IMG/VR virus record: IMGVR_UViG_3300036770_006296
Coordinates: 142,618 to 206,617 of that record
Reading direction: 5' to 3' (one strand)
DNA: 64,000 bases
Positions within the stretch are counted from its first letter, which is position 1, and each line of letters begins with the position of its first letter. Below the pieces are notes generated by a model. It searched no databases. It was not told where the DNA came from and saw nothing but the letters and a program-made list of their open reading frames with translations. A program made the position numbers and the translations under genes. Positions 2,708 to 64,000 of the stretch are shown one piece after another.

Positions 2708-3184
2708 ATGACTTATATATCCTTTACTAAAGTAGATCTACCTTATGGATGGCTAGGAAACATGTCACCTTATCCAGTAAAATACGATGGTAAGATCTGG
2801 AGGACAACAGAAGCTCTCTTTCAGGCTCTTCGGTTCAACGATGATTCTATAAAAGAAGCTATAAGAAACGAGAAAAGTCCAATGGGGGCTAAATTAAAAG
2901 CTAAGTCTCTTATGAAATTAGATCCATCTAAGGTTTGCGTTTCCCCTCTTTCTGATACTGATTTGGAAAATATGAGAATGTGTATTAGACTTAAATTGGA
3001 ACAGCACCCTCATTTACTTAGCGAGTTATTAAAGACTGGAGGCTCCAAAATATACGAGGATGTTACTTCACGTGGTAAAAGAGGTAGTAATCTATTCTGG
3101 GGAGCTCTAATGGAGAATGGGGCATGGATAGGAGAAAATCATTTGGGAAAAATATGGGAGGATATTAGAGAATCTTACAGATAA
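2708..3184 (+). CDS. NADAR family protein (YbiA/RibX-like)
   Basis: WLGNMSPYPV, TEALFQA, KLEQHP.L...L, FWG...GENHLGKI motifs. Confidence 0.85.
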   Translation: MTYISFTKVDLPYGWLGNMSPYPVKYDGKIWRTTEALFQALRFNDDSIKEAIRNEKSPMGAKLKAKSLMKLDPSKVCVSPLSDTDLENMRMCIRLKLEQHPHLLSELLKTGGSKIYEDVTSRGKRGSNLFWGALMENGAWIGENHLGKIWEDIRESYR

Positions 3185-25855: not shown

Positions 25856-26457
25856 AAAAAATATTTTTAATTATTATCCTATTGGGGATAAGGGGATTTT
25901 GCTTTTCTCAAAACTTTTATCCGATACAAACAATTTTAAAAGGAGATTCTGTTGTTATATACACGCTAGAACAGTCTCAAGATATAAATCTAATGATACA
26001 GAATCAAAAATCATTAAATGTAAGCTATAAGAGCAAATATGAGCACTATCTAGGAAAAACAGACAGTTTAGAAAAAATAGTAGCTGCGCAACTGTACTTG
26101 ATTGATAGCTTAAGATTAGTTCAAAAAAATCAAGATAGCTTGGAAAAAAAATTACACACAATAGAAAGTTGGTTAGTAAAAGCATCAATCGATAACTCTT
26201 ACCTCTATATGTCATGGCAGGATTCTAAAATTAAATCGGTGGACCTAACATTATATACTGTTCATTGCAGTATGCAAACAGGAACGATAAGAATGGTTAG
26301 GAGAGGTCCTAATGATGAATTTTATACCTGGAAAGGAATAAACCACACAAGAAGAGAAAGCCCCTCCATTAACTGGGAATTAAAATATCCAGAGGAAGAT
26401 AGGCCGATAGTTAATAATTTACCAGTAGATATCAAAATAAGTCAATATGTAAGATGA
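25852..26457 (+). CDS. secreted coiled-coil protein in two-component operon
   Basis: signal peptide, coupled start/stop with both kinases. Confidence 0.65.
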   Translation: MKKIFLIIILLGIRGFCFSQNFYPIQTILKGDSVVIYTLEQSQDINLMIQNQKSLNVSYKSKYEHYLGKTDSLEKIVAAQLYLIDSLRLVQKNQDSLEKKLHTIESWLVKASIDNSYLYMSWQDSKIKSVDLTLYTVHCSMQTGTIRMVRRGPNDEFYTWKGINHTRRESPSINWELKYPEEDRPIVNNLPVDIKISQYVR

Positions 26458-51762: not shown

Positions 51763-52020
51763 ATGAAACACATTAAGATCTACGAAAATTTTAGTTCATC
51801 TGCGGATAGAAAATATTTTACTGACGCAGAAATCCAATACTACCAAAAATTATGGGATTGGCTTCCGGAGAGATACAGATACAATCAGTTTTTCTTAAAG
51901 CTTTGGACACAAGCAACAACTAAGAAGTATCTTTCTAATAAACAGTGGATCCAACTGGAGTATTTACTAAAAAATGGTAAATCCCAATATGAGGCGGGAA
52001 TTCTTCCTAGTAATTATTGA
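51763..52020 (+). CDS. hypothetical late protein (MKHIKIYENF)
   Basis: GAATATATA at 51749; start reassigned. Confidence 0.65.
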   Translation: MKHIKIYENFSSSADRKYFTDAEIQYYQKLWDWLPERYRYNQFFLKLWTQATTKKYLSNKQWIQLEYLLKNGKSQYEAGILPSNY

Positions 52021-52066
52021 AACAATCATTAATTTTACTTGTATTATCTATACAATAAAAATTTAG

Positions 52067-52672
52067 ATGTCTAAAAAAAGAAAATGGGGAATATCTAATC
52101 CCTTCTCCGAAGGCCATAGAGAATATCTACCATCAAATTATTGTCTTTTTGATGTTGACGGGATATTGTTAGATCTCAGCGGTGATCCTGAATTTTTATA
52201 TGAGAGTAAATACAAAATGTCTTATGATGGCTCAGATTTTATAGAAAGTTTCTATAATCCTAAAAACACGCAAGCTTTCTTCTTAAGACATGTATCTCAA
52301 AAAATAGGAGTATACATTCACGAAGAAAAGACTGATCGATGGTGGTTTTTAAAAGACAGGGATCTAAATATTTCATTAAATCCTAGGCTGGATCTAATAA
52401 AGACAGAGAACAGAATTTATGTGGAAGATATAATTTCAAATTACTCCCATAATCTTTCCGGTGTATTTGTTAGAACTGAAGGTGAGAAGCCTTCGTATAT
52501 GGAGAGATATGGAGCCTTTATAGCACAAAAAATGGGTATACCTAATATATTGGTTAACGACGTGTTTGAAAGTGCTTATATACACTTCAAAAAAGAAAAT
52601 AACACATATAAATGTGATTCAAAATCCAATTGGGAATTGGTGTGGGATGATCTAGATATAGTTGGAAATTAA
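52067..52672 (+). CDS. hypothetical protein
   Basis: after GAAAC-N18-TATTA. Confidence 0.6.
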   Translation: MSKKRKWGISNPFSEGHREYLPSNYCLFDVDGILLDLSGDPEFLYESKYKMSYDGSDFIESFYNPKNTQAFFLRHVSQKIGVYIHEEKTDRWWFLKDRDLNISLNPRLDLIKTENRIYVEDIISNYSHNLSGVFVRTEGEKPSYMERYGAFIAQKMGIPNILVNDVFESAYIHFKKENNTYKCDSKSNWELVWDDLDIVGN

Positions 52673-52713
52673 GAAACTATATTTGGAGATTTCTCTATAA
52701 ATAAATAAAAAAT

Positions 52714-53064
52714 ATGCCTACTAAAAGTCGCGTAAGAAAAAAGAATGGTAAACCAGTAAAGTACAAACCGAAACCAAAAGGTTTATCAAAAACTCAGATG
52801 AAAAAGCTTTTAAAGATGATTGAGGATCAGCAGAAAGCTTCACAAGAAAATTCTGGGGAAGTATCAGAAACTAGAGAGGGAGGTGAATTATTAATTTCTC
52901 CGGAGTTTATAAAAAAACTAAATGTCAATCCCTCTGATAGTATAGAAGAGGGTCCATCTTTATACGAAGAAGATAAAACGGAGGAACCTGTTAATGAATC
53001 TGAGACTCTTGAAGAAAAAGAGGATGAAAACTTAAATCCTGGTCCTATTTCTTCCGAGATTTAA
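52714..53064 (+). CDS. protein with basic N-terminus and acidic C-terminus
   Basis: after GAAAC-N18-TATAA (52673/52696). Confidence 0.6.
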   Translation: MPTKSRVRKKNGKPVKYKPKPKGLSKTQMKKLLKMIEDQQKASQENSGEVSETREGGELLISPEFIKKLNVNPSDSIEEGPSLYEEDKTEEPVNESETLEEKEDENLNPGPISSEI

Positions 53065-53083
53065 TATAAATAAATATAAAAAC

Positions 53084-53111
53084 AAAGTCCCGTCTTAAGG
53101 CGGGATTCTTT
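53084..53111 (+). terminator. putative intrinsic terminator
   Basis: AGTCCCGTC-TTAA-GGCGGGATT hairpin. Confidence 0.55.
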
Positions 53112-53154
53112 GTGCCTTGGTGGTTATATACCATACAAAAAATAATTAAATCAT

Positions 53155-53475
53155 ATGAAAATTATTAATGATGAACAGCTAAACGAATCAATCAAAAGCG
53201 GAGAAAAAACTCTAGTTCTCTTTTCTGCAGACTGGTGTGGGCCATGTAAGATAATTAAACCAGCACTTGAAAAAGTAGAGGAGGAATTATCTAATTCTAT
53301 AAAAATAGTAAAAGCTGATGTGGGGGAGGCGGGAGAATCCGCAAAGAAATTTAACATAAAAAATATTCCTACTTGTGTACTTATAGAAGGCGAAACGGAG
53401 ATCGCTAGATTTTCTGGTGTAAAAAATGGGGATCAGATTAAAAAATTTCTAGAGGAACATCAGGTTTTAAATTGA
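53155..53475 (+). CDS. trxA: thioredoxin
   Basis: WCGPC active site, IPT. Confidence 0.93.
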   Translation: MKIINDEQLNESIKSGEKTLVLFSADWCGPCKIIKPALEKVEEELSNSIKIVKADVGEAGESAKKFNIKNIPTCVLIEGETEIARFSGVKNGDQIKKFLEEHQVLN

Positions 53476-53484
53476 AACTTTACC

Positions 53485-53524
53485 TATATTTGCGATATAT
53501 TTTAATAAAACGTTCTTTAACATA
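53485..53524 (+). promoter_or_regulatory. TATATTTG -7 box and boxA-like site upstream of ncRNA array
   Basis: TATATTTG 53485-53492; GTTCTTTAACATA 53512-53524. Confidence 0.6.
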
Positions 53525-53528
53525 CATA

Positions 53529-53745
53529 TTTTTCTTGAAGCGGTTTAAAGGGTTACTTCAAAATTTATAAACAGCGATCGATAAACAGCTCCGGCTGTTT
53601 ATTTCTAAAGACTTAGTACTTCTACAGAAGAGCGCTTCCTTAGGGGAGAAAATTACAGTAGATTGGTTTAATTCACTGACTAGAAATAAGGGAACGATTA
53701 CCTCACGTAATGAGGGACCACTCTTTAAAGATTTCTCAAGAAAAA
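53529..53745 (+). ncRNA. Y-RNA-like element 1 (long)
   Basis: ends pair (TTCTTGA/TCAAGAA; TTTAAAGGGT/ACTCTTTAAA); shared GAAGCGG...TACTTCA...TTCTC; upstream of Ro60. Confidence 0.6.
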
Positions 53746-53763
53746 AATTATATAAAAATAAAC

Positions 53764-53833
53764 TCCGAAGCGGTGAGAAGAGATACTTCAATAAGAAATC
53801 AAAAGAAAAAACCTCTTCCCTAATATTCTCGGA
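53764..53833 (+). ncRNA. Y-RNA-like element 2
   Basis: TCCGA/TCGGA closing stem, GAAGCGG, GAAGAG/CTCTTC, GATACTTCA. Confidence 0.6.
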
Positions 53834-53843
53834 TTTTTAGAAA

Positions 53844-53918
53844 TGTTCTGAAGCGGGATTTTGAGATACTTCATATATTGTTAGACTCGAAACCCTCGAA
53901 ATCAATTTTCTCAGAACA
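53844..53918 (+). ncRNA. Y-RNA-like element 3
   Basis: TGTTCTGA/TCAGAACA, GAAGCGG, GATTTTGAG/CTCGAAATC, GATACTTCA. Confidence 0.6.
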
Positions 53919-53924
53919 ACCACT

Positions 53925-53960
53925 AAGGGGTTTGGACGCTAAGCGACTGAACCCTTTTTT
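53925..53960 (+). terminator. terminator-like hairpin between ncRNA array and Ro60
   Basis: AAGGGGTTTGG...CTGAACCCTTT plus T tract. Confidence 0.5.
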
Positions 53961-53987
53961 ATTTTAGTAACTTTTTAAAACAACTAT

Positions 53988-55613
53988 ATGTCAAAGTTGA
54001 GTAATTACGCAGATAAAAAAGTAGCAATGCAAATTGCACATAATTCACTCTATGGAGCTTTTGCAGTGGAGAACTTTATGGGAGGAACATCCTATGAGAT
54101 CAATCCATTAGACACATTAAGGATTGTAGCGGCTTCCTCTATATTCGGAGAACCCCAATATTACCGTGACGGTTTAAAAGCACCTAGTAATCTTAGCACT
54201 CTTTCTAGATACTCTATATTTTCCTCGATGTATAAATCGGATTTAACATCGGTTGAAATTTTCGAAAATGCGATAGACTCTGCCCTTGACTATGACTTTA
54301 AAGGTACCCTAGATCTTGCTTTAGAATTAAGAAATAAATTCTTCATGAGACTTAATCCTGCGGTTATCTTCATAAGAGCATCGCAGCACAGTAACAGAAC
54401 AGAGTTTAATGAAGCTAACCCTGGATACATGAAAAATGTGGGTAAGTCTATCTCACTTAGACCTGATGATTTAACAAATCAATTTGAGTACTATATGTAC
54501 AAGAATGGGGGTAAAAAAGGCCTTTCGTCTTTAGTTAAAAGAACATGGGCAGAAAAACTTGGTGAATTTAGCAGATATCAATTAAATAAGTACAAAGGAA
54601 AAAGACTAATAGATCTTGTACGTATATCTCACGCAAAAGGAGAGGACATTAATGAGTTAATGTCCACCGGTACATTAAAAGTAAAAGAGACCGAAAAAAC
54701 CTGGGAAACTCTAAGATCTGAAGGAAAAACATGGAAGGAAATAGCGGATACAATTCTTATCCCTCATATGGCTTTATTAAGAAACCTTAGAGGTATATTT
54801 ACTGAGGTAGAAGATCGTACAATCACAGCGAGAATCTTAACTCAATTAAAATCTGGGGTTGAAAGTGGAAAACAATTTCCGTTTAGATATTGGTCAGCTT
54901 TTAAGGCGGTACAAAATTCAGATATACATCACAAGCAACTCGTTCTTGATACTCTAGAGGAGTGCTTAGATATTTCGGTAGCTAATATGCCTAAATTAAA
55001 GGGGAAAACTGCCTGTCTATCCGATAACTCAGGATCAGCATGGGGTTCTTTCAATAGCGAATATGGATCGGTAACTGTTGCAGAAATAGCTAACCTTTCA
55101 TCATTGACAACTGCTTTACAATCCGATGAAGGTATTGTAGGAGTATTTGGCGATAATCTTTCATTAAAAGAAGTCTCTAAAAGAAACGGTATACTCACTC
55201 AATTAGAAGAGACCTCTGAAAGAGGAAGATCTCAAGGAGGTGGAACGGAAAATGGGATATGGGTATTCTGGGACGAAGCTATAAAAAATAAAGTCCATTA
55301 CGATAACGTTTTTATCTACTCGGATATGCAGGCTGGACACGGCGGACTATATGGCCACAGCAATACAGTAGGAAGTTCTCCTTATGGACATAGCGGTAAA
55401 GGTGATGTCCATGTAGATGTACTGGCAATGGTACAAGAATACAGAAGAACTGTTAATCCCAAGGTTAATGTTTTTACTGTTCAAGTTGCAGGATACAACA
55501 ACACGGTTTTACCCGAAAATCTTTATAGAGGTGCTATATTAGCCGGATGGACAGGAAAAGAGCCACTATTTGCTAAAGCCATAATCGAAGCTTGGGATTC
55601 TATAGAATCTTAA
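53988..55613 (+). CDS. TROVE/Ro60 ribonucleoprotein (TROVE + vWA)
   Basis: NFMGG.SY, YQLNKYK, DLVRISH, TWE, MALLRNLR, QFPFRY..A, vWA DNSGS...YSDMQ. Confidence 0.92.
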   Translation: MSKLSNYADKKVAMQIAHNSLYGAFAVENFMGGTSYEINPLDTLRIVAASSIFGEPQYYRDGLKAPSNLSTLSRYSIFSSMYKSDLTSVEIFENAIDSALDYDFKGTLDLALELRNKFFMRLNPAVIFIRASQHSNRTEFNEANPGYMKNVGKSISLRPDDLTNQFEYYMYKNGGKKGLSSLVKRTWAEKLGEFSRYQLNKYKGKRLIDLVRISHAKGEDINELMSTGTLKVKETEKTWETLRSEGKTWKEIADTILIPHMALLRNLRGIFTEVEDRTITARILTQLKSGVESGKQFPFRYWSAFKAVQNSDIHHKQLVLDTLEECLDISVANMPKLKGKTACLSDNSGSAWGSFNSEYGSVTVAEIANLSSLTTALQSDEGIVGVFGDNLSLKEVSKRNGILTQLEETSERGRSQGGGTENGIWVFWDEAIKNKVHYDNVFIYSDMQAGHGGLYGHSNTVGSSPYGHSGKGDVHVDVLAMVQEYRRTVNPKVNVFTVQVAGYNNTVLPENLYRGAILAGWTGKEPLFAKAIIEAWDSIES

Positions 55614-55632
55614 TTTTTTTGCTATCTTTTTT

Positions 55633-55659
55633 AAAATCCCTAGCGATAGGGATTTTTTT
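55633..55659 (+). terminator. intrinsic terminator
   Basis: AAAATCCCTA-GCGA-TAGGGATTTT plus T tract. Confidence 0.8.
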
Positions 55660-55693
55660 GTGGTTTTTTTCTACAAATAGGATAAATACTTAT

Positions 55694-55945
55694 ATGAAAA
55701 TAATAAAAACATACGAGAACTATAATGTTATAGACATGGGAAGGAACGAACCAGTAAAAAAATACGGCGAGCCTTATCCACTAACTAATCTTAAGAAGGG
55801 TGATAAAGTAACATACTTAGGTACTCCTTTTATCGTAGACAAAGTAGACGAGTATACATTATTATTAAAATCTGCGGAAGATGGATCTGCTTTAAGAGTA
55901 AATCAAAACATGTTTAATCAGAGAGGATTTATTGGACCTATTTAA
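55694..55945 (+). CDS. hypothetical late protein (MKIIKTYENY)
   Basis: GATAAATA at 55681; start reassigned. Confidence 0.65.
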   Translation: MKIIKTYENYNVIDMGRNEPVKKYGEPYPLTNLKKGDKVTYLGTPFIVDKVDEYTLLLKSAEDGSALRVNQNMFNQRGFIGPI

Positions 55946-55956
55946 TATTTAAAATC

Positions 55957-56139
55957 ATGGAAGAAGAAATTAAGATATTAAATATTCTATCAGAAAAAAC
56001 AAAAAACGATATAAAGATGTTTGTTACCAATTGCTCTATATCAGAAGATCCTGAAAGAAAAAAGAAATTTTACGATATTATCCAAAGGGTAATAGTTGAA
56101 TCCTCATTGGGGACAAAAGATAAAATAAACTTTCAATAA
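55957..56139 (+). CDS. hypothetical protein
   Basis: ORF in operon. Confidence 0.5.
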   Translation: MEEEIKILNILSEKTKNDIKMFVTNCSISEDPERKKKFYDIIQRVIVESSLGTKDKINFQ

Positions 56140-56285
56140 TGGCAAAAATTAAATCTCTAGACTCTTCAAAAAATCACATAAGAAAACCTAGAAAAAAAAG
56201 ACCGGGCATACATTCTAAATGTAAAACAAGTGTTAGTAAGAATGCTAAACACTATAAAAAGCCTTATAGATCTCAAGGTAGATAG
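56139..56285 (+). CDS. small very basic protein ending YKKPYRSQGR (48 aa, not in ORF track)
   Basis: TAATG coupling; K/R-rich. Confidence 0.6.
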   Translation: MAKIKSLDSSKNHIRKPRKKRPGIHSKCKTSVSKNAKHYKKPYRSQGR

Positions 56286-56308
56286 AAAGGATATATAAAA
56301 TAAAAAAA

Positions 56309-56701
56309 ATGAAACACCTTAGAATATACGAAAGCTTCGCTAGAGAAGTAGAAATGGATCAGGTCATGCCAGACACTGATATGGATCCAATGTCAAGTGA
56401 TATGGGAATGGAAATGGAAAATGGTAGCTTCGAAGCAGAATCTACAGATTTCGTTTCAACTCCAGAAGGACAAGAAGGTGATTATATAGTAAAATTTATT
56501 AATCCAGAGGGAGAGGAAGTAACAGTTACAGTAGGGCACGCAATAGACCCTGAGTACATGGGGAAGAAAATGATTAGTGCTATAGAAATGATACCAGATT
56601 CAAGCTCAGACGGTAGACAATATTCATTTATAGGATACTATGACGAAATCCCTGGATCCGCTGGAGCTTATGAACTTAAGAGGGTTTTAATTGAGGGATA
56701 A
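56309..56701 (+). CDS. acidic late protein (MKHLRIYESF)
   Basis: GATATATA at 56290. Confidence 0.65.
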   Translation: MKHLRIYESFAREVEMDQVMPDTDMDPMSSDMGMEMENGSFEAESTDFVSTPEGQEGDYIVKFINPEGEEVTVTVGHAIDPEYMGKKMISAIEMIPDSSSDGRQYSFIGYYDEIPGSAGAYELKRVLIEG

Positions 56702-56703
56702 TA

Positions 56704-56994
56704 ATGTCTATAAAAATATATTCAGGCTATGATGAATTTAAATATGAAGAGCCTGAATTGTGTGATTGTATAGATATAGAAGAACGTGATTCTTACGAAG
56801 ATGAACAGGAGGAAGAATCAAATGATGTTTTTTTCTATGCTACTAAAACCTCCGATTTTATAGATTCCTCAACTTTTTATGTTGTATCAGATCTAGAGGA
56901 CGAAGAAAATGCAGAAGACATATCTGGATATTTAGGAAAATTTAAAAAAATGTACATACCAGATTTCCACAAGGTTCTGTTTTGTGTAAATTAA
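56704..56994 (+). CDS. acidic hypothetical protein
   Basis: ORF in operon. Confidence 0.55.
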   Translation: MSIKIYSGYDEFKYEEPELCDCIDIEERDSYEDEQEEESNDVFFYATKTSDFIDSSTFYVVSDLEDEENAEDISGYLGKFKKMYIPDFHKVLFCVN

Positions 56995-57000
56995 CATAAA

Positions 57001-57930
57001 ATGAAAAAAATACTAGATTTCAAAGAATTTTCTTTATTCGAAAATGAAATTTCGGATGGTAAATCAAACATCTTTGATTTCAATAATAAATTAATTTATA
57101 GGACACTAAAAGATATAAAGACAACAACCATAGGGGGAAGAGAATATAACTTTCTATGCGTTGGTAGCGGAATGAAAACCTATGCAGATTCTGTTGCCAA
57201 GTCCAATAAAAAAATAGGAGACGTTCTACTAAAAATCGCTGAAAAGAAAGATAAATCTTTAGTTTTTACCCCTGATGGAATATACGTAGTTTCTGAGGCA
57301 GTTTCAGACGGATTAATGTCTTTAACATCATCTATTTTTTCGTATGTAAAAGAGGGTGAGATAACAGCGGGATTAAGTGTTATTTATACTTTTAAAAGAA
57401 TCAATACATATTATACAGATAAGGGAGAAGAGGCTTTTAGTAATATGAAAGAAGACCCTGCTGCTTTGTTTAAAATGATCATCAAAGATCTTTATAAACT
57501 AGCAGATAAATCACCAAATGCTTCAGAAGCAGTATCTATATTAACTGTTGGCGCATATAAAGCATCAACATCATCCTTTAAAACAATCCCGGAATTTTTA
57601 AATTCGTGTCTATATGAAACAGCTAAAGAATTAGGAATAAAATCTGTAAACATAGGACAAAACATAGAAGATTTCTATAAGGTTTGCCAAAACACGCTAG
57701 ACAATTTAAAAGTACCAGTTAACAAAACTATAGAGGAGGGAGTAGAGAAAATGTCTCAGATGATAGATAAGGGTATAAGAAAAGGAAGAATATTCGGAGC
57801 TAGATTAGAAAAAGAAACACAGGATGCTCTCAAAGCAGTACAAGATAGAATAGCACCAACAGGAAAAGCGATAGCTACAAAAAGCAAAAATATCTGGAAT
57901 TCAATTTCCGGAAAAAAAGTAACTAATTAA
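57001..57930 (+). CDS. hypothetical protein (MKKILDFKEFSLFENE)
   Basis: N-terminal motif. Confidence 0.65.
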   Translation: MKKILDFKEFSLFENEISDGKSNIFDFNNKLIYRTLKDIKTTTIGGREYNFLCVGSGMKTYADSVAKSNKKIGDVLLKIAEKKDKSLVFTPDGIYVVSEAVSDGLMSLTSSIFSYVKEGEITAGLSVIYTFKRINTYYTDKGEEAFSNMKEDPAALFKMIIKDLYKLADKSPNASEAVSILTVGAYKASTSSFKTIPEFLNSCLYETAKELGIKSVNIGQNIEDFYKVCQNTLDNLKVPVNKTIEEGVEKMSQMIDKGIRKGRIFGARLEKETQDALKAVQDRIAPTGKAIATKSKNIWNSISGKKVTN

Positions 57931-57935
57931 TACTA

Positions 57936-58001
57936 AATCATTTTTTTTATTAATAGAAATAGTCTATATTTGTGAAACAAAACAAAGGAAACAATATATA
58001 A
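57936..58001 (+). promoter_or_regulatory. stacked promoters of tRNA cluster 1
   Basis: AATCA-T8 (57936) + TATATTTG (57965); GAAAC (57974) + TATAA (57997); AATATATA. Confidence 0.65.
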
Positions 58002-58008
58002 TACTTAA

Positions 58009-58083
58009 ATGAACAAATTAATTAACATATTACCTTCCATATTAAGACCGTCGATAAGACGATCTCGAAAGGTCCTGTGTTAG
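58009..58083 (+). CDS. attenuator leader peptide 1 MNKLINILPSILRPSIRRSRKVLC
   Basis: 24 codons; codons 7-20 only Ile/Leu/Pro/Ser/Arg; 3' end complementary to terminator arm. Confidence 0.75.
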   Translation: MNKLINILPSILRPSIRRSRKVLC

Positions 58084-58104
58084 TTTTAACTATAACTATA
58101 AACT

Positions 58105-58138
58105 AAAAACCGGGACCTTTAAAAGTCCCGGTTTTTTT
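58105..58138 (+). terminator. attenuator terminator 1
   Basis: AAAAACCGGGAC-ctttaaaa-GTCCCGGTTTTTTT; 5' arm alternatively pairs with 58068-58077. Confidence 0.85.
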
Positions 58139-58140
58139 AT

Positions 58141-58153
58141 GTTCTTTGAAATA
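58141..58153 (+). promoter_or_regulatory. boxA-like antitermination site
   Basis: GTTCTTTGAAATA. Confidence 0.6.
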
Positions 58154-58156
58154 ATT

Positions 58157-58246
58157 GGAGAGGTGGCAGAGCCCGGTTTAATGCACCAGTCTTGAAAACT
58201 GACGTAGTGAAAGCTACCGGGGGTTCGAATCCCTCCCTCTCCGCCA
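58157..58246 (+). tRNA. tRNA-Ser(TGA)
   Basis: cloverleaf, long variable arm, CT-TGA-AA loop, encoded CCA. Confidence 0.95.
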
Positions 58247-58249
58247 TTT

Positions 58250-58323
58250 GGTCCGATAGCTCAGCTGGATAGAGCAACTGCCTTCTAAGCAGTAGGTCGC
58301 AGGTTCGAATCCTGCTCGGATCA
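58250..58323 (+). tRNA. tRNA-Arg(TCT)
   Basis: cloverleaf, CT-TCT-AA. Confidence 0.95.
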
Positions 58324-58329
58324 CTATAT

Positions 58330-58402
58330 CGGGATGTAGATCAGTTGGTAGATCGCCTGGTTTGGGACCGGGAGGTCCCAGGTTCGAGTCCTGATATCCC
58401 GA
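58330..58402 (+). tRNA. tRNA-Pro(TGG)
   Basis: cloverleaf, TT-TGG-GA. Confidence 0.93.
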
Positions 58403-58410
58403 CAGCTCTT

Positions 58411-58484
58411 AGAGGCGTAGCTCAATTGGTTAGAGCACATGCCTTATACGCATGCGGTCATGGGTTCGACTCCCATCGTCTCTA
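58411..58484 (+). tRNA. tRNA-Ile(TAT)
   Basis: CATGC-CT-TAT-AC-GCATG anticodon arm. Confidence 0.88.
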
Positions 58485-58488
58485 CTTA

Positions 58489-58562
58489 GGTCCCTTAGCT
58501 CAGTAGGTTAGAGCAACTGACTCATAATCAGTAGGTCCACGGTTCGAGCCCGTGAGGGACCA
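58489..58562 (+). tRNA. tRNA-Ile2(CAT) (lysidine type; elongator Met not excluded)
   Basis: GGTCCCTTAGCTCAG...CTCATAA; resembles ileX-type tRNAs. Confidence 0.85.
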
Positions 58563-58653
58563 CAAAGATACGGATGAGATTTCTAAATCTCCTACTTACT
58601 TATGAAAAGAAGGATTCCGTAACTAATACCATATAGTAGTGATGGTATTGCCT

Positions 58654-58737
58654 GCCCGGGTGATGGAATGGTAGACATGAGGGACTTAAAATCCCTTGGC
58701 CCTAAAGGCCGTGCGGGTTCGACTCCCGCCTCGGGTA
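58654..58737 (+). tRNA. tRNA-Leu(TAA)
   Basis: AGGGA-CT-TAA-AA-TCCCT, long variable arm. Confidence 0.95.
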
Positions 58738-58751
58738 CTGAATTAAAATAT

Positions 58752-59444
58752 ATGATAAAAGAATTAGAAGGATTTCAATGGGGCTGGATGGATCGGGGAA
58801 CAGATTCAGGAAACTACCACAAAGAAACCATGATAGGAGAAATATTCCTACAAAGAGCTTACGAAAGAATATTCGAAGTGGAACAAGGAGATATAGTTTT
58901 GGATGTCGGAGCTAGTGTAGGACCTTTTACAAGATCAATCTTAAGTAAAAACCCCAAACATGTTTTTTGTTTAGAGCCAAGTGTTTCTGAATTCAAATGC
59001 CTAGTTAAAAACACAATTGGATATCCAGTAACTCAAATAAACAAGGGAATTTGGGATTTTAATGGATCGGTAAATAGCGACCAACTATTCGGAGGGGAAG
59101 CACAAATGGAAACAATGACCTTTAGGACTTTCTTAGATCTTTTTGGTATTGATAGAATAGATTTTCTAAAAACTGATTGTGAAGGAGGTGAATATGAGAT
59201 ATTTAACTCAGAAAATCTGGATTTTATAAAATCAAATGTTCGTAAGGTGGTAGGTGAATGGCACTTGAGATCGCCAGGGAATAAAGATAAATTTAGAAAT
59301 TTCAGAGATACAGTTCTTCCATTATTTCAAAAGTACGAGGTTTATTCAATAGACGGGATTGATATAAAATGGGATCTATGGAATGAGCACTTCTTAGAAT
59401 ATTACGACGAGGTGATTCTTTATATAGATAACAGGAATATGTGA
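58752..59444 (+). CDS. FkbM family methyltransferase
   Basis: VLDVGASVG, LEP, IDFLKTDCEGGE; start moved out of tRNA-Leu. Confidence 0.85.
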   Translation: MIKELEGFQWGWMDRGTDSGNYHKETMIGEIFLQRAYERIFEVEQGDIVLDVGASVGPFTRSILSKNPKHVFCLEPSVSEFKCLVKNTIGYPVTQINKGIWDFNGSVNSDQLFGGEAQMETMTFRTFLDLFGIDRIDFLKTDCEGGEYEIFNSENLDFIKSNVRKVVGEWHLRSPGNKDKFRNFRDTVLPLFQKYEVYSIDGIDIKWDLWNEHFLEYYDEVILYIDNRNM

Positions 59445-59560
59445 CCTATAAAGGTGTAGAAACTATAACATGGACGGAAGAAAATGCAGATACTATTTGT
59501 AATTTTCTAAAACATAATAGACTTGTATCATTTTATGGATATATAGAATAAAGTCAAAAA

Positions 59561-60946
59561 ATGAGACCAAGCAGAGTACTAAACTTTGATAGTTATACCA
59601 AATTATTTGAGCAGGAGTCTTCTACACCAGTTAAAACAATCAGCGAGATAATATCTCTCTTTTTTAAATGTTACATGTTTGTAGCTACTAAAGCAGTAGA
59701 TTATAAAGATGTACTTGCCGATTTGATATCTGTATCAGAAGAAAAAGATCCAGCTAAAAGATCCGAAACAATGGAATCTGTTATTAAAAAAGTAGCAGAG
59801 AAAATAGATCCAAAATATGCTACAATAAAAGAAGATGCTATTAAAGCAGCAACTTCTATCAAAGAAATCTATGCTCAAGTTGCTTCAGCAGAAGATGCTA
59901 AAAAGAACGCAGATGCAATTAATAAAATGGTTACTAGTAAAATAGTAAACTATCAAGATATTCTTAAAAATGAGCCTTTAAAAGAGCACGCAAATGTATA
60001 TGGGTTTGATCAATATTCATTCCCTTTACTTTACGAGAAAAATACATTCGATGACGAAAGAGCAGCTCTTACAGATAAAATGAAATCTTTGTATTCTGAA
60101 ATGATTTCACAGAAAAAAAATCCTAGCAGTGCAACATTAAAAGCTAAAGCCGATGAGGTTGTATCTAAGTTTGATGAGTATCAAAAATTACTCTCTGATA
60201 AAGGGGCTTGGGAAAAAATGAAGAGGAAGGAAAGGAAGGAAAAATTAGAGACGATGAATGCTGAGATTGATGATATGATTCAAAAAGCCAATCAGCTTCA
60301 AAAATCTGAATTAGCCAAGATCGGGGTAGACAAGAAAATAGCAGATACTATGTCAAATATTATCACTAGTATAAATTCTATGTCTGATAAAGCTAAAGCT
60401 ATTGACGATAAAGCAATTGCTGACGCTAAGGATGCCGAAGAAAAAAAGAATCAAGAAAAGGTAGAGTATAAAGCTGGTGACATTGTTAAATATAAGAAGG
60501 ATAACGGTGAAGAAGCACAGAGCGAGATAGTTAAAATAGAGGGGGACAAAGTTTACTTTAAAGATAAGGACGGAAAAGAATTTTCTAAGGACAAAAAAGA
60601 CCTTACGGGAAAAGTAGAAGGGAAAGAAGAAGATAAAGACAAAGGTAAGGATATTAGCAGTGGTAATGTAGACAAGAAAAATCTAAAAAAAGATGGTCCT
60701 AATGTTGAAGCAATTAAGAAATTCCAAGAAGACTATAACAATTTAGGAATAGGAAAAAAATTAACGGCTGACGGATTATACGGAAAAAATACAGAAATCG
60801 CTGTTGATAAAGTTGCTAAGATGATTAAAAACATATCTGGAAAAGATATTAATACCGACGGAGGTAAAAAACTTACTGGAGATCTTCAGGATAATCTTAA
60901 AAAATTACTAGCTAATAAGGATAAGATTAAAGAAATCCTCGGATAA
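59561..60946 (+). CDS. late helical protein with C-terminal PG-binding-like motif
   Basis: GATATATA at 59538; FDSYTKLFEQE motif; LTADGLYGKNT. Confidence 0.6.
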   Translation: MRPSRVLNFDSYTKLFEQESSTPVKTISEIISLFFKCYMFVATKAVDYKDVLADLISVSEEKDPAKRSETMESVIKKVAEKIDPKYATIKEDAIKAATSIKEIYAQVASAEDAKKNADAINKMVTSKIVNYQDILKNEPLKEHANVYGFDQYSFPLLYEKNTFDDERAALTDKMKSLYSEMISQKKNPSSATLKAKADEVVSKFDEYQKLLSDKGAWEKMKRKERKEKLETMNAEIDDMIQKANQLQKSELAKIGVDKKIADTMSNIITSINSMSDKAKAIDDKAIADAKDAEEKKNQEKVEYKAGDIVKYKKDNGEEAQSEIVKIEGDKVYFKDKDGKEFSKDKKDLTGKVEGKEEDKDKGKDISSGNVDKKNLKKDGPNVEAIKKFQEDYNNLGIGKKLTADGLYGKNTEIAVDKVAKMIKNISGKDINTDGGKKLTGDLQDNLKKLLANKDKIKEILG

Positions 60947-60999
60947 AAAAATTAACAGTTCTAATACAATAGGAGCTGGAATTTTAAAAAAATGAAAAA

Positions 61000-61284
61000 A
61001 TGAAACATATATTCGAATTTGAATCATTCTCAGAAAAAGTAAATGAGGGATTCTGGAATTCTCTTTTTGGTGGACCAACAGTTGATGACGCAGCTCATGA
61101 TTCTATGAGAGGACAAGGATTTAGCCACAGAGGTAAAGATAAGGATGAACAAAACTACATCGTGTTCCAAGGACAAAAATTCTATCCTGATCAAATTCAA
61201 TATGATGATGTTTATTCAACTAAACCTATCCCAAGAATAGAAAATGGAATTCTTATAGTTGCTAATCCGGCTTGGAATTTATAA
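61000..61284 (+). CDS. hypothetical protein (MKHIFEFESFSEKVNE)
   Basis: N-terminal motif. Confidence 0.65.
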   Translation: MKHIFEFESFSEKVNEGFWNSLFGGPTVDDAAHDSMRGQGFSHRGKDKDEQNYIVFQGQKFYPDQIQYDDVYSTKPIPRIENGILIVANPAWNL

Positions 61285-61295
61285 AAAAAATCAAA

Positions 61296-61345
61296 AATCA
61301 TTTTTTTTATTGGAAACTTTTAGCTACTTTTGAGGTATATAAATA
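61296..61345 (+). promoter_or_regulatory. stacked promoters of tRNA cluster 2
   Basis: AATCA-T8 (61296) + TACTTTTG (61325); GAAAC (61313); GTATATAAATA. Confidence 0.6.
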
Positions 61346-61362
61346 AAAGAACAAAAAATTCA

Positions 61363-61437
61363 ATGCAACAATTTCTAAATATCGTACAAGTTCAGCTCGA
61401 TCTTCTTGAGGATATTGGAAAGTGTCAGAGGAATTAA
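61363..61437 (+). CDS. attenuator leader peptide 2 MQQFLNIVQVQLDLLEDIGKCQRN
   Basis: 24 codons; CTC GAT CTT CTT GAG GAT run; 3' end complementary to terminator arm. Confidence 0.7.
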   Translation: MQQFLNIVQVQLDLLEDIGKCQRN

Positions 61438-61457
61438 TTGATATAACGATACAATTT

Positions 61458-61486
61458 AAACCTCTGATAACCTCAGAGGTTTTTTT
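61458..61486 (+). terminator. attenuator terminator 2
   Basis: AAACCTCTGA-taacc-TCAGAGGTTTTTTT; 5' arm alternatively pairs with 61423-61431. Confidence 0.85.
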
Positions 61487-61495
61487 GTTTTATAT

Positions 61496-61508
61496 GGTCT
61501 TTGAAATA
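61496..61508 (+). promoter_or_regulatory. boxA-like site
   Basis: GGTCTTTGAAATA. Confidence 0.55.
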
Positions 61509-61516
61509 TTGAAATT

Positions 61517-61601
61517 AGGAATAAGGTAACCACAAACCCACTGGTATTAGGCAGCTCTTGAGATGGAATGCAAGACAGAGCGTAGGTCCTGCCTTATTCC
61601 T
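61517..61601 (+). ncRNA. unclassified structured RNA heading tRNA cluster 2
   Basis: 12-bp terminal stem AGGAATAAGGTA/TGCCTTATTCCT enclosing two hairpins. Confidence 0.5.
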
Positions 61602-61608
61602 TTTTTAT

Positions 61609-61680
61609 GGTCGGTTCATCTAGGGGTCAGGATACAAGGTTTTCATCCTTGTCACACGGGTTCGAATCCCGTACCGACTA
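61609..61680 (+). tRNA. tRNA-Glu(TTC)
   Basis: CAAGG-TT-TTC-AT-CCTTG. Confidence 0.93.
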
Positions 61681-61766
61681 CTACAGCCTGTACCCTTGAG
61701 AAACTCGTATTTAAAGATAAGCAGGTTGGTTACGAAATAAAAGGGTAAGAGAATAAGTAACAAATT

Positions 61767-61840
61767 GGTCCTACAGTCCAGTTGGAGTGGACGCCGCCCT
61801 GTCACGGCGGAGATCGCGGGTTCGAGTCCCGCTAGGACCG
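61767..61840 (+). tRNA. tRNA-Asp(GTC)
   Basis: CCGCC-CT-GTC-AC-GGCGG. Confidence 0.93.
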
Positions 61841-61846
61841 CAATAT

Positions 61847-61919
<73 letters not shown>

Positions 61920-61990
61920 CTAAGCCCCCATTTCGTACCGTTACTGGATAATATAAATCTAAGTAACGTACGAAATGGAAATAATTTAAA

Positions 61991-62003
61991 GTTCTTTGAT
62001 ATA
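61991..62003 (+). promoter_or_regulatory. boxA-like site within cluster 2
   Basis: GTTCTTTGATATA after long hairpin 61928-61978. Confidence 0.5.
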
Positions 62004-62067
62004 CTTTATTACATCAATTTCAGATTTGGTAGTCTTTCTTGGATATATATACTAAAACGATTGTTTT

Positions 62068-62523
62068 ATGTATAGCAAAAATAAAATATCAGATATAATG
62101 ATAATAGAGGAGATAAAAACAGGAAATACGATGAATACCTGCGCTATTAATCTAGGTATTAAATTTTCGACGTTTAAAAGAAGAGCAATTTTACTTGGTG
62201 TTTATACTCCAAATCAAGGAAGAAAAGGAATTAAAAGAAATCCTAGTGAATTTAATAAAATTACAATATCTTTAGACGATATAATATCGGGGAAACATGA
62301 AGGACATTATACATCTTCAAGATTAAGAAAAAGATTAATTAAAGAAGGATATAAGAAAAATCAATGTGAAGAATGTAATATAAAAGAATGGAACGGGAAA
62401 GAGATAACATGTGAGCTACATCACATTGACGGAAATAGGGGTAATAACAGGTTGGAAAATTTATTAATACTCTGCCCTAATTGTCACTCTCAAACCCCTA
62501 ACCACTCAAAAAGAAATACCTAG
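62068..62523 (+). mobile_element. HNH endonuclease inserted in tRNA cluster
   Basis: CEEC...ELHHIDGNRGNNRLENLLILCPNCH; GATATATA at 62042. Confidence 0.88.
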
Positions 62524-62591
62524 GTACCCCAATTGGCAGAGGGAATAGATTTAGGATCTATAAAGTGAGGGTTCGAGTCCCTCCCTGGGTA
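62518..62591 (+). tRNA. tRNA-Leu(TAG) with short variable loop
   Basis: ACCTAGG/CCTGGGT-A, ATAGA-TT-TAG-GA-TCTAT, 5-nt variable loop. Confidence 0.85.
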
Positions 62592-62599
62592 CACCAAAA

Positions 62600-62673
62600 G
62601 GTCCCTTAGCTCAGTAGGTTAGAGCAACTGACTCATAATCAGTAGGTCCACGGTTCGAGCCCGTGAGGGACCA
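62600..62673 (+). tRNA. tRNA-Ile2(CAT), identical copy of 58489-58562
   Basis: exact duplicate sequence. Confidence 0.85.
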
Positions 62674-62674
62674 C

Positions 62675-63193
62675 ATGAAAGTTTTATTTTTAGATCATGA
62701 TGGAGTAATTTGTCTTTCTTCACAATGGGGAGGGAGATACAAGAAGAAAGGATACGATAGTAATCCCGAAACTCCGCTGGATCTTAGAATGGACAGCTTT
62801 GATAAAAAGGCGGTTAAGGTTCTAAACGAGATTATAGAATTAACTGGATGCGAAATCGTTGTTTCTTCAGATTGGAAAAACTGGGGAGATTTAGAACAGA
62901 TGCAAAAAATGTATATTACTCGGGGGATCAAACCTCCTATCGATCTTACTCCTAACATGAAAGATTTCGACGAGAATGGATTTGCTCTTTTTGAATGGAA
63001 AGAGTTATATGGAGCTATACGTGTTACAGAAATTAGGGAATGGCTTAAAAATCACCCAGAAGTAACACATTGGGTTGCTGTTGATGATATGGATCTTTCT
63101 AAGTTAGATAACTTTGTAATGACTACTAAACCTTACAATGAGGGGATAAAACAATCAGGAATTAAGGATAAAATCGTTAAATTTTTGATTTAA
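62675..63193 (+). CDS. HAD-superfamily protein (Swiss-army-knife RNA-repair HAD-like)
   Basis: VLFLDHDGV, IVVSSDW, EI.EWL..HP, WVAVDD; start moved out of tRNA. Confidence 0.75.
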   Translation: MKVLFLDHDGVICLSSQWGGRYKKKGYDSNPETPLDLRMDSFDKKAVKVLNEIIELTGCEIVVSSDWKNWGDLEQMQKMYITRGIKPPIDLTPNMKDFDENGFALFEWKELYGAIRVTEIREWLKNHPEVTHWVAVDDMDLSKLDNFVMTTKPYNEGIKQSGIKDKIVKFLI

Positions 63194-63278
63194 TTAATAA
63201 AATCTTTTTTTAGGGCCGTTATATTTCGCTAATTTTGTGATATAATGTATGTATAAGTTTAACATTAAAAATTTTATT

Positions 63279-63671
63279 ATGGAAAAACAAATTTTAAAAA
63301 GATTTACTATGAATGTGGATCACACAAACCCAGATGCTAAGATGTCATTCACTACTGTTGGTACTGGTAAAACAGAAAGGGAAGCAGCAGTATTTGCTCT
63401 TGGTATGTTTTATAAAATCATGGATGGTGACGAGGGTGACCAAGGAATTCAAAGATATGAGGATGCTTTGGAAATTGTTAATGAGAAATTGGAGGAAGTG
63501 GAAATTGATCAGGTGATAGACTCTTTAATAATGGGAGAGGTAGAAAAAGATTCAGATATTTTCTATAATGCTTATGAGTCCACTAAAGTTGAATATAGCT
63601 GGAGCGAGGTTAAAGAAGTGTCGGAGTGTGGATATACGGCCAGTATGGAAGTAATCGAAACTTATTACTAA
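63279..63671 (+). CDS. hypothetical acidic protein
   Basis: class I promoter 63201-63237. Confidence 0.6.
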   Translation: MEKQILKRFTMNVDHTNPDAKMSFTTVGTGKTEREAAVFALGMFYKIMDGDEGDQGIQRYEDALEIVNEKLEEVEIDQVIDSLIMGEVEKDSDIFYNAYESTKVEYSWSEVKEVSECGYTASMEVIETYY

Positions 63672-63689
63672 TTAATCCAAAAATATCAG

Positions 63690-63755
63690 AAACCATTTTT
63701 TATTCAAAATAATTGTTATACTTTTGTGAAACAGTATCGGAATAAAGATATATAA
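63690..63755 (+). promoter_or_regulatory. stacked promoters of tRNA cluster 3
   Basis: AAACCA-T6 + TACTTTTG (63719); GAAAC (63728) + TATAA (63751); GATATATA (63747). Confidence 0.65.
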
Positions 63756-63765
63756 GAAAGAAACA

Positions 63766-63873
63766 ATGAAAAACTGTAGTAAACATAACATCATTCGCAT
63801 GAACAGTCAGATTAATGGCTGCTATCAAACGGTGGCGTTTTGGGCTAAGGGGAAAGAACCCGATCGGAGCTAG
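63766..63873 (+). CDS. attenuator leader peptide 3 MKNCSKHNIIRMNSQINGCYQTVAFWAKGKEPDRS
   Basis: 35 codons, 19 amino acids, no Leu; 3' end complementary to terminator arm. Confidence 0.72.
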   Translation: MKNCSKHNIIRMNSQINGCYQTVAFWAKGKEPDRS

Positions 63874-63902
63874 ATACAGGAAATCATAAATAGATATTTT
63901 GG

Positions 63903-63932
63903 AAAAGGCTTCGATTATTCGAAGCCTTTTTT
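63903..63932 (+). terminator. attenuator terminator 3
   Basis: AAAAGGCTTCGA-ttat-TCGAAGCCTTTTTT; 5' arm alternatively pairs with 63862-63871. Confidence 0.85.
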
Positions 63933-63936
63933 ATTT

Positions 63937-63949
63937 GTTCTTTGACATA
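63937..63949 (+). promoter_or_regulatory. boxA-like site
   Basis: GTTCTTTGACATA. Confidence 0.6.
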
Positions 63950-63959
63950 CTGGAAAATT

Positions 63960-64000
63960 GGGTTGGTAGCAAAGTTGGTCAATGCACTAGACTGAAAATC
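63960..64000 (+). tRNA. tRNA-Phe(GAA), truncated by window end
   Basis: GGGTTGG TA GCAAAGTTGGTCAATGC A CTAGA-CT-GAA-AA-TC. Confidence 0.75.

Follow-up and report, generated by a model that had tools for sequence, protein, structure and literature searches.

Putative leader-peptide attenuators upstream of three tRNA gene clusters in a phage contig

The window analysed here, the last 64 kb of the IMG/VR contig IMGVR_UViG_3300036770_006296 (206,617 bp), carries three clusters of phage transfer RNA (tRNA) genes. Each cluster is preceded by a short open reading frame (ORF), an intrinsic terminator and a boxA-like motif, and the end of each ORF can pair with the terminator region to form an antiterminator. 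The codons of the ORFs correspond to the tRNAs encoded downstream of them. We propose that each of the three clusters is controlled by a ribosome-mediated (leader-peptide) transcription attenuator, and from the sequence comparisons described below we put the probability of this reading at about 0.8. The first unit has the following parts.

57937-57972, plus strand: promoter-like region, with the T-rich motif ATCATTTTTTTTATT at 57937-51 and the box TATATTTG at 57965-72
58009-58083, plus strand: leader ORF 1, 24 codons and TAG, predicted peptide MNKLINILPSILRPSIRRSRKVLC
58027-58059, plus strand: 11 consecutive codons readable by cluster-1 tRNAs, the proposed stall sites (the 14-codon run extends to 58068)
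58020-58085, plus strand: 1:2 hairpin (anti-antiterminator), -19.3 kcal/mol; its 3' strand is the 5' strand of the antiterminator
58068-77 and 58080-86 with 58100-06 and 58111-20, plus strand: antiterminator (2:3), -18.5 kcal/mol
58105-58139, plus strand: intrinsic terminator (hairpin to 58136), a 12-bp stem with 6 G-C pairs followed by a T run, -18.2 kcal/mol
58141-58153, plus strand: boxA-like motif, GTTCTTTGAAATA
58157-58738, plus strand: tRNA cluster 1 (ARAGORN, Rfam), Ser-tga, Arg-tct, Pro-tgg, Ile-tat, a CAT tRNA (Ile2-like) and Leu-taa

Leader ORF 1 begins ATG AAC AAA TTA ATT AAC and ends AAG GTC CTG TGT TAG, with the stop codon at 58081-83. The core between them had been singled out by the sequence-only reading, and rereading codons 7-20 confirmed it as ATA TTA CCT TCC ATA TTA AGA CCG TCG ATA AGA CGA TCT CGA. 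All fourteen codons encode Ile, Leu, Pro, Ser or Arg and these are, as that reading held, exactly the five amino acids of the six downstream tRNAs, the first of which (tRNA-Ser) starts at 58157. The codons served by cluster 1 (ATA, TTA, AGA, CCN and TCN) include those that the phage uses most for Ile, Leu and Arg. In E. coli, the cluster's CAT tRNA is best matched by genes annotated as tRNA-Ile (79-81% identity over the full length), which makes it a reasonable candidate for an Ile2 (lysidine-type) tRNA. This gene occurs in two identical copies (58489-58563 and 62600-62674, plus strand). Together with tRNA-Ile(tat), three genes would thus serve ATA, which accounts for 57% of the phage's Ile codons. 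Within cluster 1 a 90-nucleotide (nt) spacer with two hairpins lies between the CAT tRNA and Leu-taa (58564-58653, plus strand). It is absent from the related contigs L002-L004, which have instead a 167-nt spacer between Arg-tct and Pro-tgg (L002 11873-12038).

The significance of the run was assessed against the codon usage of 78 long ORFs of the window. Ile, Leu, Pro, Ser and Arg make up 30.8% of these codons, and the codon boxes of the six cluster-1 tRNAs 20.8%. Those boxes hold 13 of 23 leader-1 codons where 4.8 would be expected (P = 1.9e-4). The analytic probability per ORF is about 8e-7 for the 14-codon run of the five amino acids and about 4e-7 for the 11-codon cognate run. Neither run occurs in 15,444 windows of the real genes in the 64 kb. 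A six-frame scan (127,918 windows) gave the 14-codon run in two windows and the 11-codon run in one, presumably the leader itself. When the background is instead pooled from leaders of many phages (below), 11 of 12 core codons are matched (P = 3.7e-5). The run is therefore far beyond what chance would produce.

These figures bear on the suggestion that the match is chance, or a by-product of AT-rich codon usage, of low-complexity repeats or of the bases that the hairpins require. Leader 1 does contain internal repeats, the rare codons CCG, TCG and CGA sit in stem regions, and ATA, AGA and TTA are the phage's commonest codons for Ile, Arg and Leu. A by-product of this kind would leave unexplained why real genes of the window hold no comparable run, why the five amino acids of the run are exactly those of the array and why unrelated leaders with other tRNA sets show the same correspondence, and show it in the ORF frame only. 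We regard this explanation as extremely improbable.

Codon usage does limit what leader 1 can say about isoacceptors. The match had been described as largely isoacceptor-specific (ATA, TTA and AGA chosen to suit the encoded tRNAs), yet the phage writes 57% of Ile as ATA, 71% of Arg as AGA and 40% of Leu as TTA. Since these are its preferred codons, the codon choice of leader 1 alone shows no isoacceptor specificity. The claim does not reach significance within the window because of this confounding, and gains support only from the comparison across families given below. The two CGA codons, which tRNA-Arg(tct) does not read and which had been entered as a caveat, fall in the last seven codons and in a hairpin stem, where codon-tRNA matching is generally absent. 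RNA structure and position explain them better than a role as regulatory codons.

Folding of the unit-1 transcript gives three mutually exclusive helices (1:2, 2:3 and 3:4), and the fold of leader 1 as a whole is well outside the range of shuffled sequences (z = -6.1). The 5' strand of the antiterminator (segment 2) spans the last five codons and the stop codon of the ORF. An extension of the antiterminator by pairing of TTAGTTT with AAACTAA had been suggested earlier; it is real and forms part of the -18.5 kcal/mol helix. A ribosome at the TAG codon would mask segment 2, and a ribosome held at codons 7-16 would leave it accessible; the trp and his attenuators have this geometry. Upstream of the ORF, the leader as far as 58008 is A-rich and contains no Shine-Dalgarno sequence. 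The box TATATTTG fits TAnnTTTG, the -7 promoter consensus of Bacteroidota. The T-rich motif ahead of the box recurs exactly at 61297 and is invariant in six relatives. A sigma-70 promoter scan was uninformative (35 sites found, 40.8 expected).

Nine further contigs of the same phage group were compared, among them L002-L004, L085, L090, L091, L094 and L097. In these relatives the leader regions are 85-89% identical as DNA, as against 58-80% identity for the flanking 309-residue protein. The changes that do occur fit a translated ORF constrained by RNA structure. Leader 1 is conserved in L002, L003, L004, L090 and L091. Its core varies at codon 8 (L/S), codon 10 (S/I/L) and codon 12 (L/S), always within the cluster-1 set, and Ile stays ATA and Leu stays TTA throughout. 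In L090 and L091 a 1-nt deletion creates a TAA stop directly before the AGGTCC antiterminator strand. Leader 2 shows a 15-nt insertion or deletion that is in frame and keeps its core rich in Leu, Asp and Glu. Substitutions in leader 3 are mostly synonymous (AGT to AGC, CAG to CAA, AAT to AAC, GGG to GGA, CGG to CGA), and its stop codon changes from TAG to TAA in the same place. The non-synonymous changes in the run in the middle of that ORF are swaps between Ile and Asn, both of them cluster-3 amino acids.

Units 2 and 3 are unrelated to unit 1 in sequence and have their parts in the identical order. The three leader ORFs (24, 24 and 35 codons) begin 30-40 nt downstream of promoter-like boxes.

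61297-61332, plus strand: promoter-like region of unit 2, ATCATTTTTTTTATT followed by TACTTTTG
61363-61437, plus strand: leader ORF 2, 24 codons, predicted peptide MQQFLNIVQVQLDLLEDIGKCQRN
61423-31 with 61461-69, plus strand: antiterminator of unit 2, -15.4 kcal/mol
61458-82 and T run to 61489, plus strand: terminator of unit 2, -14.8 kcal/mol
61496-61508, plus strand: boxA-like motif of unit 2, GGTCTTTGAAATA
61609-62674, plus strand: tRNA cluster 2, Glu-ttc, Asp-gtc, an initiator-like CAT tRNA, an HNH ORF, Leu-tag and the second Ile2-like CAT tRNA
63709-63716, plus strand: -7-like box of unit 3, TACTTTTG
63766-63873, plus strand: leader ORF 3, 35 codons, predicted peptide MKNCSKHNIIRMNSQINGCYQTVAFWAKGKEPDRS, excerpt MKNCSKHNIIRMNSQINGCYQTVAFWAKGK
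63862-71, plus strand: antiterminator 5' strand of unit 3, overlapping the stop codon at 63871-73 (antiterminator -21.3 kcal/mol)
63900-33, plus strand: terminator of unit 3, -21.4 kcal/mol
63937-49, plus strand: boxA-like motif of unit 3, GTTCTTTGACATA
63960-64000, plus strand: start of tRNA cluster 3 (Phe-gaa), cut off by the contig end

In leader 2 the run CTC GAT CTT CTT GAG GAT (LDLLED) holds Leu as CTN, Asp and Glu, with a probability of about 4e-3, and Leu is written CTN in four of four cases. The cluster-3 array can be read from relatives, where it comprises 15 tRNAs (Phe, Lys, Trp, Arg(acg), Cys, Ile(gat), Val, Asn, Tyr, Gly, Ala, Met, His, Thr and Gln). All 15 of these amino acids are present in leader 3 (P = 1.4e-3 for a random 34-codon ORF) and the cluster-3 boxes hold 27 of its 34 codons (P = 0.008). 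Leader 3 contains no Leu codon, and uses ATC/ATT and CGC instead of the phage-favoured ATA and AGA. The 1:2 hairpin is clear only in leader 1. Folding of the untranslated leader 2 RNA favours the antiterminator, and in leader 3 it is not clear that segment 2 is sequestered by the large 5' structure.

Two further elements were noted in the second tRNA region. The HNH endonuclease ORF (62068-62523, plus strand) is inserted into cluster 2, with the initiator-like tRNA before it and Leu-tag after it. The stop codon of this ORF overlaps the first bases of tRNA-Leu (62518), and the ORF has its own upstream copy of the boxA-like motif (61991-62003); the insertion is absent from L002, and gaps of about 1 kb of a similar kind split arrays in other phages. 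A 100-nt element (61509-61608, plus strand) separates the boxA-like motif of unit 2 from tRNA-Glu and has a long closing stem AGGAATAAGG...CCTTATTCC followed by TTTTTT. The window and L002 have this element, L003 lacks it, and it folds no better than shuffled sequences (z = -1.6). It may represent a second structure of the terminator type, or else a small RNA that was inserted. The initiator-like CAT tRNA itself (61847-61920, plus strand) has a C1:A72 mismatch and a GGG/CCC anticodon stem.

The same arrangement recurs well beyond this phage group. A search of IMG/VR for the pattern of a T run and then G[GCT]TCTTTGA[AC]ATA yielded at least 120 stretches, a motif-based sample and no census. Counting the matches listed and the earlier loci, at least 57 non-identical places have the motif less than 200 nt upstream of a tRNA. 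In at least 48 of these 57 an ATG-initiated ORF ends 45-115 nt before the motif, and these leaders fall into at least 26 families. A more distant contig found through its methyltransferase gene (L073) has a leader unit before Gly, Trp, Cys, Gln, Glu and Asp tRNAs. Its leader, MLNKTGHIKGFNGCDWQQEPSCPFVRV (excerpt MLNKTGHIKGFNGCDWQQE), contains the run G-C-D-W-Q-Q-E, exactly the six amino acids of its array, and its final codons, GTTCGGGTA, have the same sequence as the 3' arm of the terminator. Further leaders and their downstream tRNAs include the following.

L194: leader containing LPETYHNDQPEDNKPL; tRNAs Thr, Tyr, Glu, His, Asp, Asn, Gln, Pro and Leu
L170: leader containing NKHMNVVIWKQQFSNCSYP; tRNAs Pro, Ile, Lys, Cys, Trp, Asn, Tyr, Gln, Met and Val
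L138: leader rich in N, Y and E; tRNAs Tyr, Glu and Asn
L143: leader rich in K, F, S, W and H; tRNAs Lys, and Phe, Trp, Ser and His

In L143 a tRNA-like sequence with acceptor and T-arm (2894-3002, plus strand) lies between the boxA-like motif and tRNA-Lys. ARAGORN does not call it, and it may be an intron-containing or degenerate tRNA.

Cross-family tests used the 26 families among the matches listed, with one representative each. When leaders were permuted against arrays, the true pairings gave 324 matched codons of 767, compared with 227.6 +/- 14 for permuted pairings (z = 6.8), a value reached by none of 20,000 permutations. Of the 158 amino acids that the arrays serve, 149 occur in the leader of the same unit, compared with 116.5 after permutation (z = 6.2). 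The result holds when array gap limits of 400, 700 or 1100 nt are applied, and the signal rises when the last five codons are left out (z up to 8.8). Tested unit by unit against a background pooled from the leaders, 14 of 26 reach P < 0.05 and four reach P < 0.001. The correspondence belongs to the ORF frame, where 42% of codons match, as against 29% and 24% in the other two frames.

The position of the matching codons is also informative. Enrichment is confined to codons 9-28 upstream of the stop codon (0.41-0.57, compared with about 0.30 for non-self pairings) and is absent from the last eight codons, which form the antiterminator strand, and from the first four. A ribosome stalled over this stretch would not cover the antiterminator strand, as the attenuator model requires. 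A terminator was found in 24 of the 26 representatives, with the leader stop codon 23-40 nt before it. In 19 of those 24 the ORF ends in ~24 nt complementary to the 5' arm of the terminator (z < -2 against shuffles). The leader peptide starts with MK in 16 of 26 families. Eleven of the 26 families have TAnnTTTG 18-45 nt before the leader ATG, and one more has it at 76 nt, where 0.075 would be expected per 90 nt. Many other units carry promoters of the TTGACA...TATATTT type, so the hosts may be diverse. The earlier reading of the first unit as a leader-peptide attenuator is supported: the ORF is conserved, terminator and antiterminator exclude one another and the codon match recurs in independent leaders.

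Isoacceptors separate across families in a way that leader 1 alone could not reveal. Leaders of arrays with Ile(gat) as the only Ile tRNA contain 12 ATY and no ATA codons, and those of Ile(tat) arrays three ATA and one ATY. Arrays with only Leu(taa) have seven TTR and no CTN codons in their leaders; arrays with only Leu(tag) have nine CTN and three TTR. Arg follows the same trend (4:1 against 1:3). These data bear on what is sensed. An attenuator could respond to a general signal, such as amino-acid starvation or a global slowdown of translation, and not to the abundance of particular tRNAs. A stalled ribosome cannot distinguish a missing from an uncharged tRNA, classic attenuators respond to charging, and leader 3 samples 15 amino acids as a broad sensor would. 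A general sensor, however, needs neither a leader that mirrors its array nor a choice of ATA or ATY, TTR or CTN that follows the isoacceptor, and an additional tRNA would bring no relief from amino-acid starvation. A general sensor seems to us unlikely. We lean instead towards a modular system of tRNA homeostasis in phages with large tRNA repertoires. In such a system the leader 'barcode' of each array would gauge the speed of the ribosome on that array's own codons, so that the phage would detect the loss of particular host tRNAs, be it through codon-usage mismatch, host shut-off or an anticodon-nuclease defence, and transcribe only the matching replacements.

The motif that follows the terminator permits a different reading of the whole arrangement. 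It contains GTTCTTTGA (GUUCUUUGAAAUA as RNA). In the 64-kb window exact or near-exact copies of G(T/G)TCTTTGA(A/C/T)ATA are confined to the tRNA region, at 58141, 61496, 63937 and, before the HNH ORF, 61991; it precedes tRNA arrays in many viral contigs. The boxA of E. coli rrn operons is TGCTCTTTAACAA, with the core GCUCUUUA; our literature search found no boxA consensus for Bacteroidota. A scan of cellular genomes for the T run and motif gave at least 120 matches, mostly random; among the matches listed, one adjoins tRNAs. It lies in a Bacteroidales metagenome-assembled genome (L234 5930-6010, minus strand), where a TAATTTTG promoter box is followed by a hairpin and T6 right after the likely start site, then by GTTCTTTGAAATA and, four bases on, by tRNA-Thr. 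This operon is of the thrU type (Thr-Thr-Tyr-Gly-Thr-Trp) and has no leader ORF. Its leader may be boxB-boxA-like, or an attenuator without an ORF. The cellular matches listed gave no evidence of a full leader-ORF unit in bacteria. From these comparisons we infer that the motif is a boxA-like anti-termination or processing signal for untranslated stable RNA, which would imply that transcription of the tRNAs begins upstream and passes the attenuator.

Alternatively, the small ORF with its promoter and terminator could be a separate gene or an insulator, and the array would have its own promoter, the GTTCTTTGA(A/C)ATA motif. The motif stands 3-25 nt (sometimes ~100 nt) before the first tRNA, directly after a strong terminator, and also precedes the HNH ORF at 61991. 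Single-element phage promoters do exist, those of the T4 late genes for example. An insulating gene would not explain why leader content tracks the downstream tRNAs in frame and in a position-specific manner, nor why, in 19 of 24 families, the terminator arm finds its complement at the end of the ORF. The motif itself is restricted to the tRNA region of the window, unlike a general class of phage promoters, resembles the rrn boxA core and is found in the Bacteroidales tRNA operon downstream of a host-type promoter and hairpin. It is not spaced as a -33/-7 promoter pair. We therefore think it quite unlikely that the ORF and the array are separate units.

Our model for the attenuator runs as follows. 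From the arrangement of the units we infer translation of the ORF, ribosome stalling, the direction of regulation and the function of the boxA-like element. Transcription would start at a host-type promoter, and the transcript would open with a short ORF on which translation begins efficiently. A ribosome that reaches the stop codon would cover the 5' strand of the antiterminator, so that the terminator folds and the polymerase stops before the tRNAs. Without a ribosome, in unit 1 at least, the 1:2 hairpin would sequester the antiterminator strand, again giving termination. A shortage of cognate aminoacyl-tRNA would stall the ribosome in the middle of the ORF and allow the antiterminator strand to pair with the 5' arm of the terminator. 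Once the antiterminator has formed, the polymerase would read through the boxA-like element into the tRNA array. The new tRNAs would speed the ribosome to the stop codon and termination would be restored. The circuit would thus sense decoding capacity for the codons of its array, providing product feedback on tRNA supply during infection, and three such units would give separate control of three tRNA subsets. The trigger could be a codon-usage mismatch with the host, decay of host tRNAs or an anticodon-nuclease defence.

The units share with the trpL, hisL, leuL, thrL, ilvL and pheL attenuators a short ORF with regulatory codons, alternative 2:3 and 3:4 hairpins (in unit 1 clearly also 1:2) and an intrinsic terminator. 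In trp-type attenuators, too, a ribosome at the stop codon masks segment 2 and one stalled upstream frees it, and thrL and ilvL likewise combine several amino acids. Apart from the 1:2 helix, the structural features that define leader-peptide attenuators are present throughout: an ORF (predicted to be translated), regulatory codons, a terminator and an exclusive antiterminator that a ribosome at the stop codon would mask. The regulated genes differ. To our knowledge, all described leader-peptide attenuators regulate genes for amino-acid biosynthesis or aminoacyl-tRNA synthetases; here only tRNA genes lie downstream. The output is thus a tRNA array and not enzymes, and the sensed quantity can be the product itself. 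The phage leaders, in contrast to those of trp type, are 'barcodes' that reflect their array in 3 to 15 different amino acids, are phage-borne, occur several to a genome and have a boxA-like element after the terminator. The E. coli pheST operon with its pheM leader shares leader-peptide attenuation of the translation apparatus, but it concerns a gene for a synthetase protein and a single amino acid, not tRNA genes, and does not belong to a phage.

T-box riboswitches also choose between terminator and antiterminator according to the state of a specific tRNA, with codon-like specificity. They bind uncharged tRNA directly, through the specifier loop and T-box sequence, without translation and mostly in Firmicutes; the phage units have an ORF and no T-box motif. 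Rfam gave no T-box match over 52000-64000 even at E <= 1, where it listed only tRNAs and sub-threshold matches of terminator shape. Among the latter, Thr_leader, Phe_leader and L20_leader (24.8, 26 and 25.8 bits against gathering thresholds of 55, 55 and 58.7) were rejected as resembling the region in terminator shape only, and the units are not similar in sequence to the classical leaders. With boxA of rrn operons and lambda nut sites, which acts through NusB-NusE, the motif G(T/G/C)TCTTTGA(A/C)ATA shares a U-rich core and a place at the start of untranslated stable-RNA units. The phage motif differs in following an attenuator terminator, and its binding of Nus factors is putative. A literature search for leader-peptide or attenuation control of tRNA genes and for regulation of phage tRNAs found no description, which is not proof of novelty; a review of jumbo phages mentions tRNAs as repertoire only. 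The mechanism class is known (trp, his, pheST). The tRNA-gene target and the multi-amino-acid 'barcode' leaders appear to be undescribed.

Several points weigh against attenuation by leader peptides. Leader 2 is not enriched beyond its six-codon run (7 of 24 codons overall, P = 0.36), and it is rich in Gln, yet cluster 2 has no Gln tRNA. In L004 leader 3 is retained unchanged with only 6 of the 15 tRNAs downstream (Phe, Arg, Cys, Ile, Thr and Gln). Across families there is no clear codon-level partition for Ser and Arg, and Ser shows nothing. Several units match poorly (L193, L191 and L120, for example). Some of these may be mis-delimited arrays or false units; array boundaries are uncertain, and poor matches improve when a gap of about 1 kb is bridged, as in L126. 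Such gaps are probably due to a homing endonuclease, as in cluster 2 of the window. The leader families share ancestry, leader and array being inherited together, and are not fully independent. The role of the motif as boxA is putative, and a promoter at this place would make the tRNAs independent of readthrough. Support for the model is comparative throughout.

Why phages carry tRNAs is debated. Compensation for codon usage, degradation of host tRNAs and escape from anticodon nucleases have all been considered. If our model is correct, phages would gauge decoding capacity codon by codon and make tRNAs on demand, and the debate would become directly testable. Leader-peptide attenuation, a 50-year-old paradigm, would extend to non-coding RNA genes and to product feedback. 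These units would be the first attenuators that sense the regulated gene's own product and the first translation-based regulation of viral tRNA genes. For annotation, the leader peptide would predict the tRNA set of its unit, also for ambiguous CAT tRNAs and where homing endonucleases interrupt the array. Such leaders could also serve synthetic biology as compact, programmable multi-codon sensors.

The window has a G+C content of 33% and encodes phage-type and RNA-related proteins, including a Dda-like helicase and a thymidylate synthase. No close cultured phage was found; megablast matches for the region consist of tRNAs only, and leaders 1 and 3 have no homologue by DNA similarity among 50,697 GenBank phage records. 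The cultured Flavobacterium phage elemoA, which shares the CAT tRNA, has a single tRNA and, by its annotation alone, no such unit. The best matches of the helicase are proteins of Flavobacterium and crAss-like phages (~30% identity). Together with the TAnnTTTG boxes this is only suggestive of a host.

Genes for RNA repair and modification surround the tRNA region, as judged by the two that flank the clusters: an FkbM-type methyltransferase after cluster 1 (58752-59444, plus strand) and, directly after cluster 2, a HAD domain of 'Swiss army knife' RNA-repair proteins (62675-63193, plus strand; 2.4e-23). A gene for a Ro60/TROVE-like RNA-binding protein (53988-55613, plus strand; Pfam TROVE 8e-8, PHROG 850 1.8e-43) is found 2.5 kb before the tRNA region, with a separate terminator at 55633-56. 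No Y-RNA or YrlA partner for it was found at threshold; weak YrlA matches overlap tRNAs at 58295-58544 only. The phage also encodes two sensor histidine-kinase-like proteins, one with GAF, PAS and HATPase_c domains (24089-25855, plus strand) and one with HATPase_c (26454-27893, plus strand).

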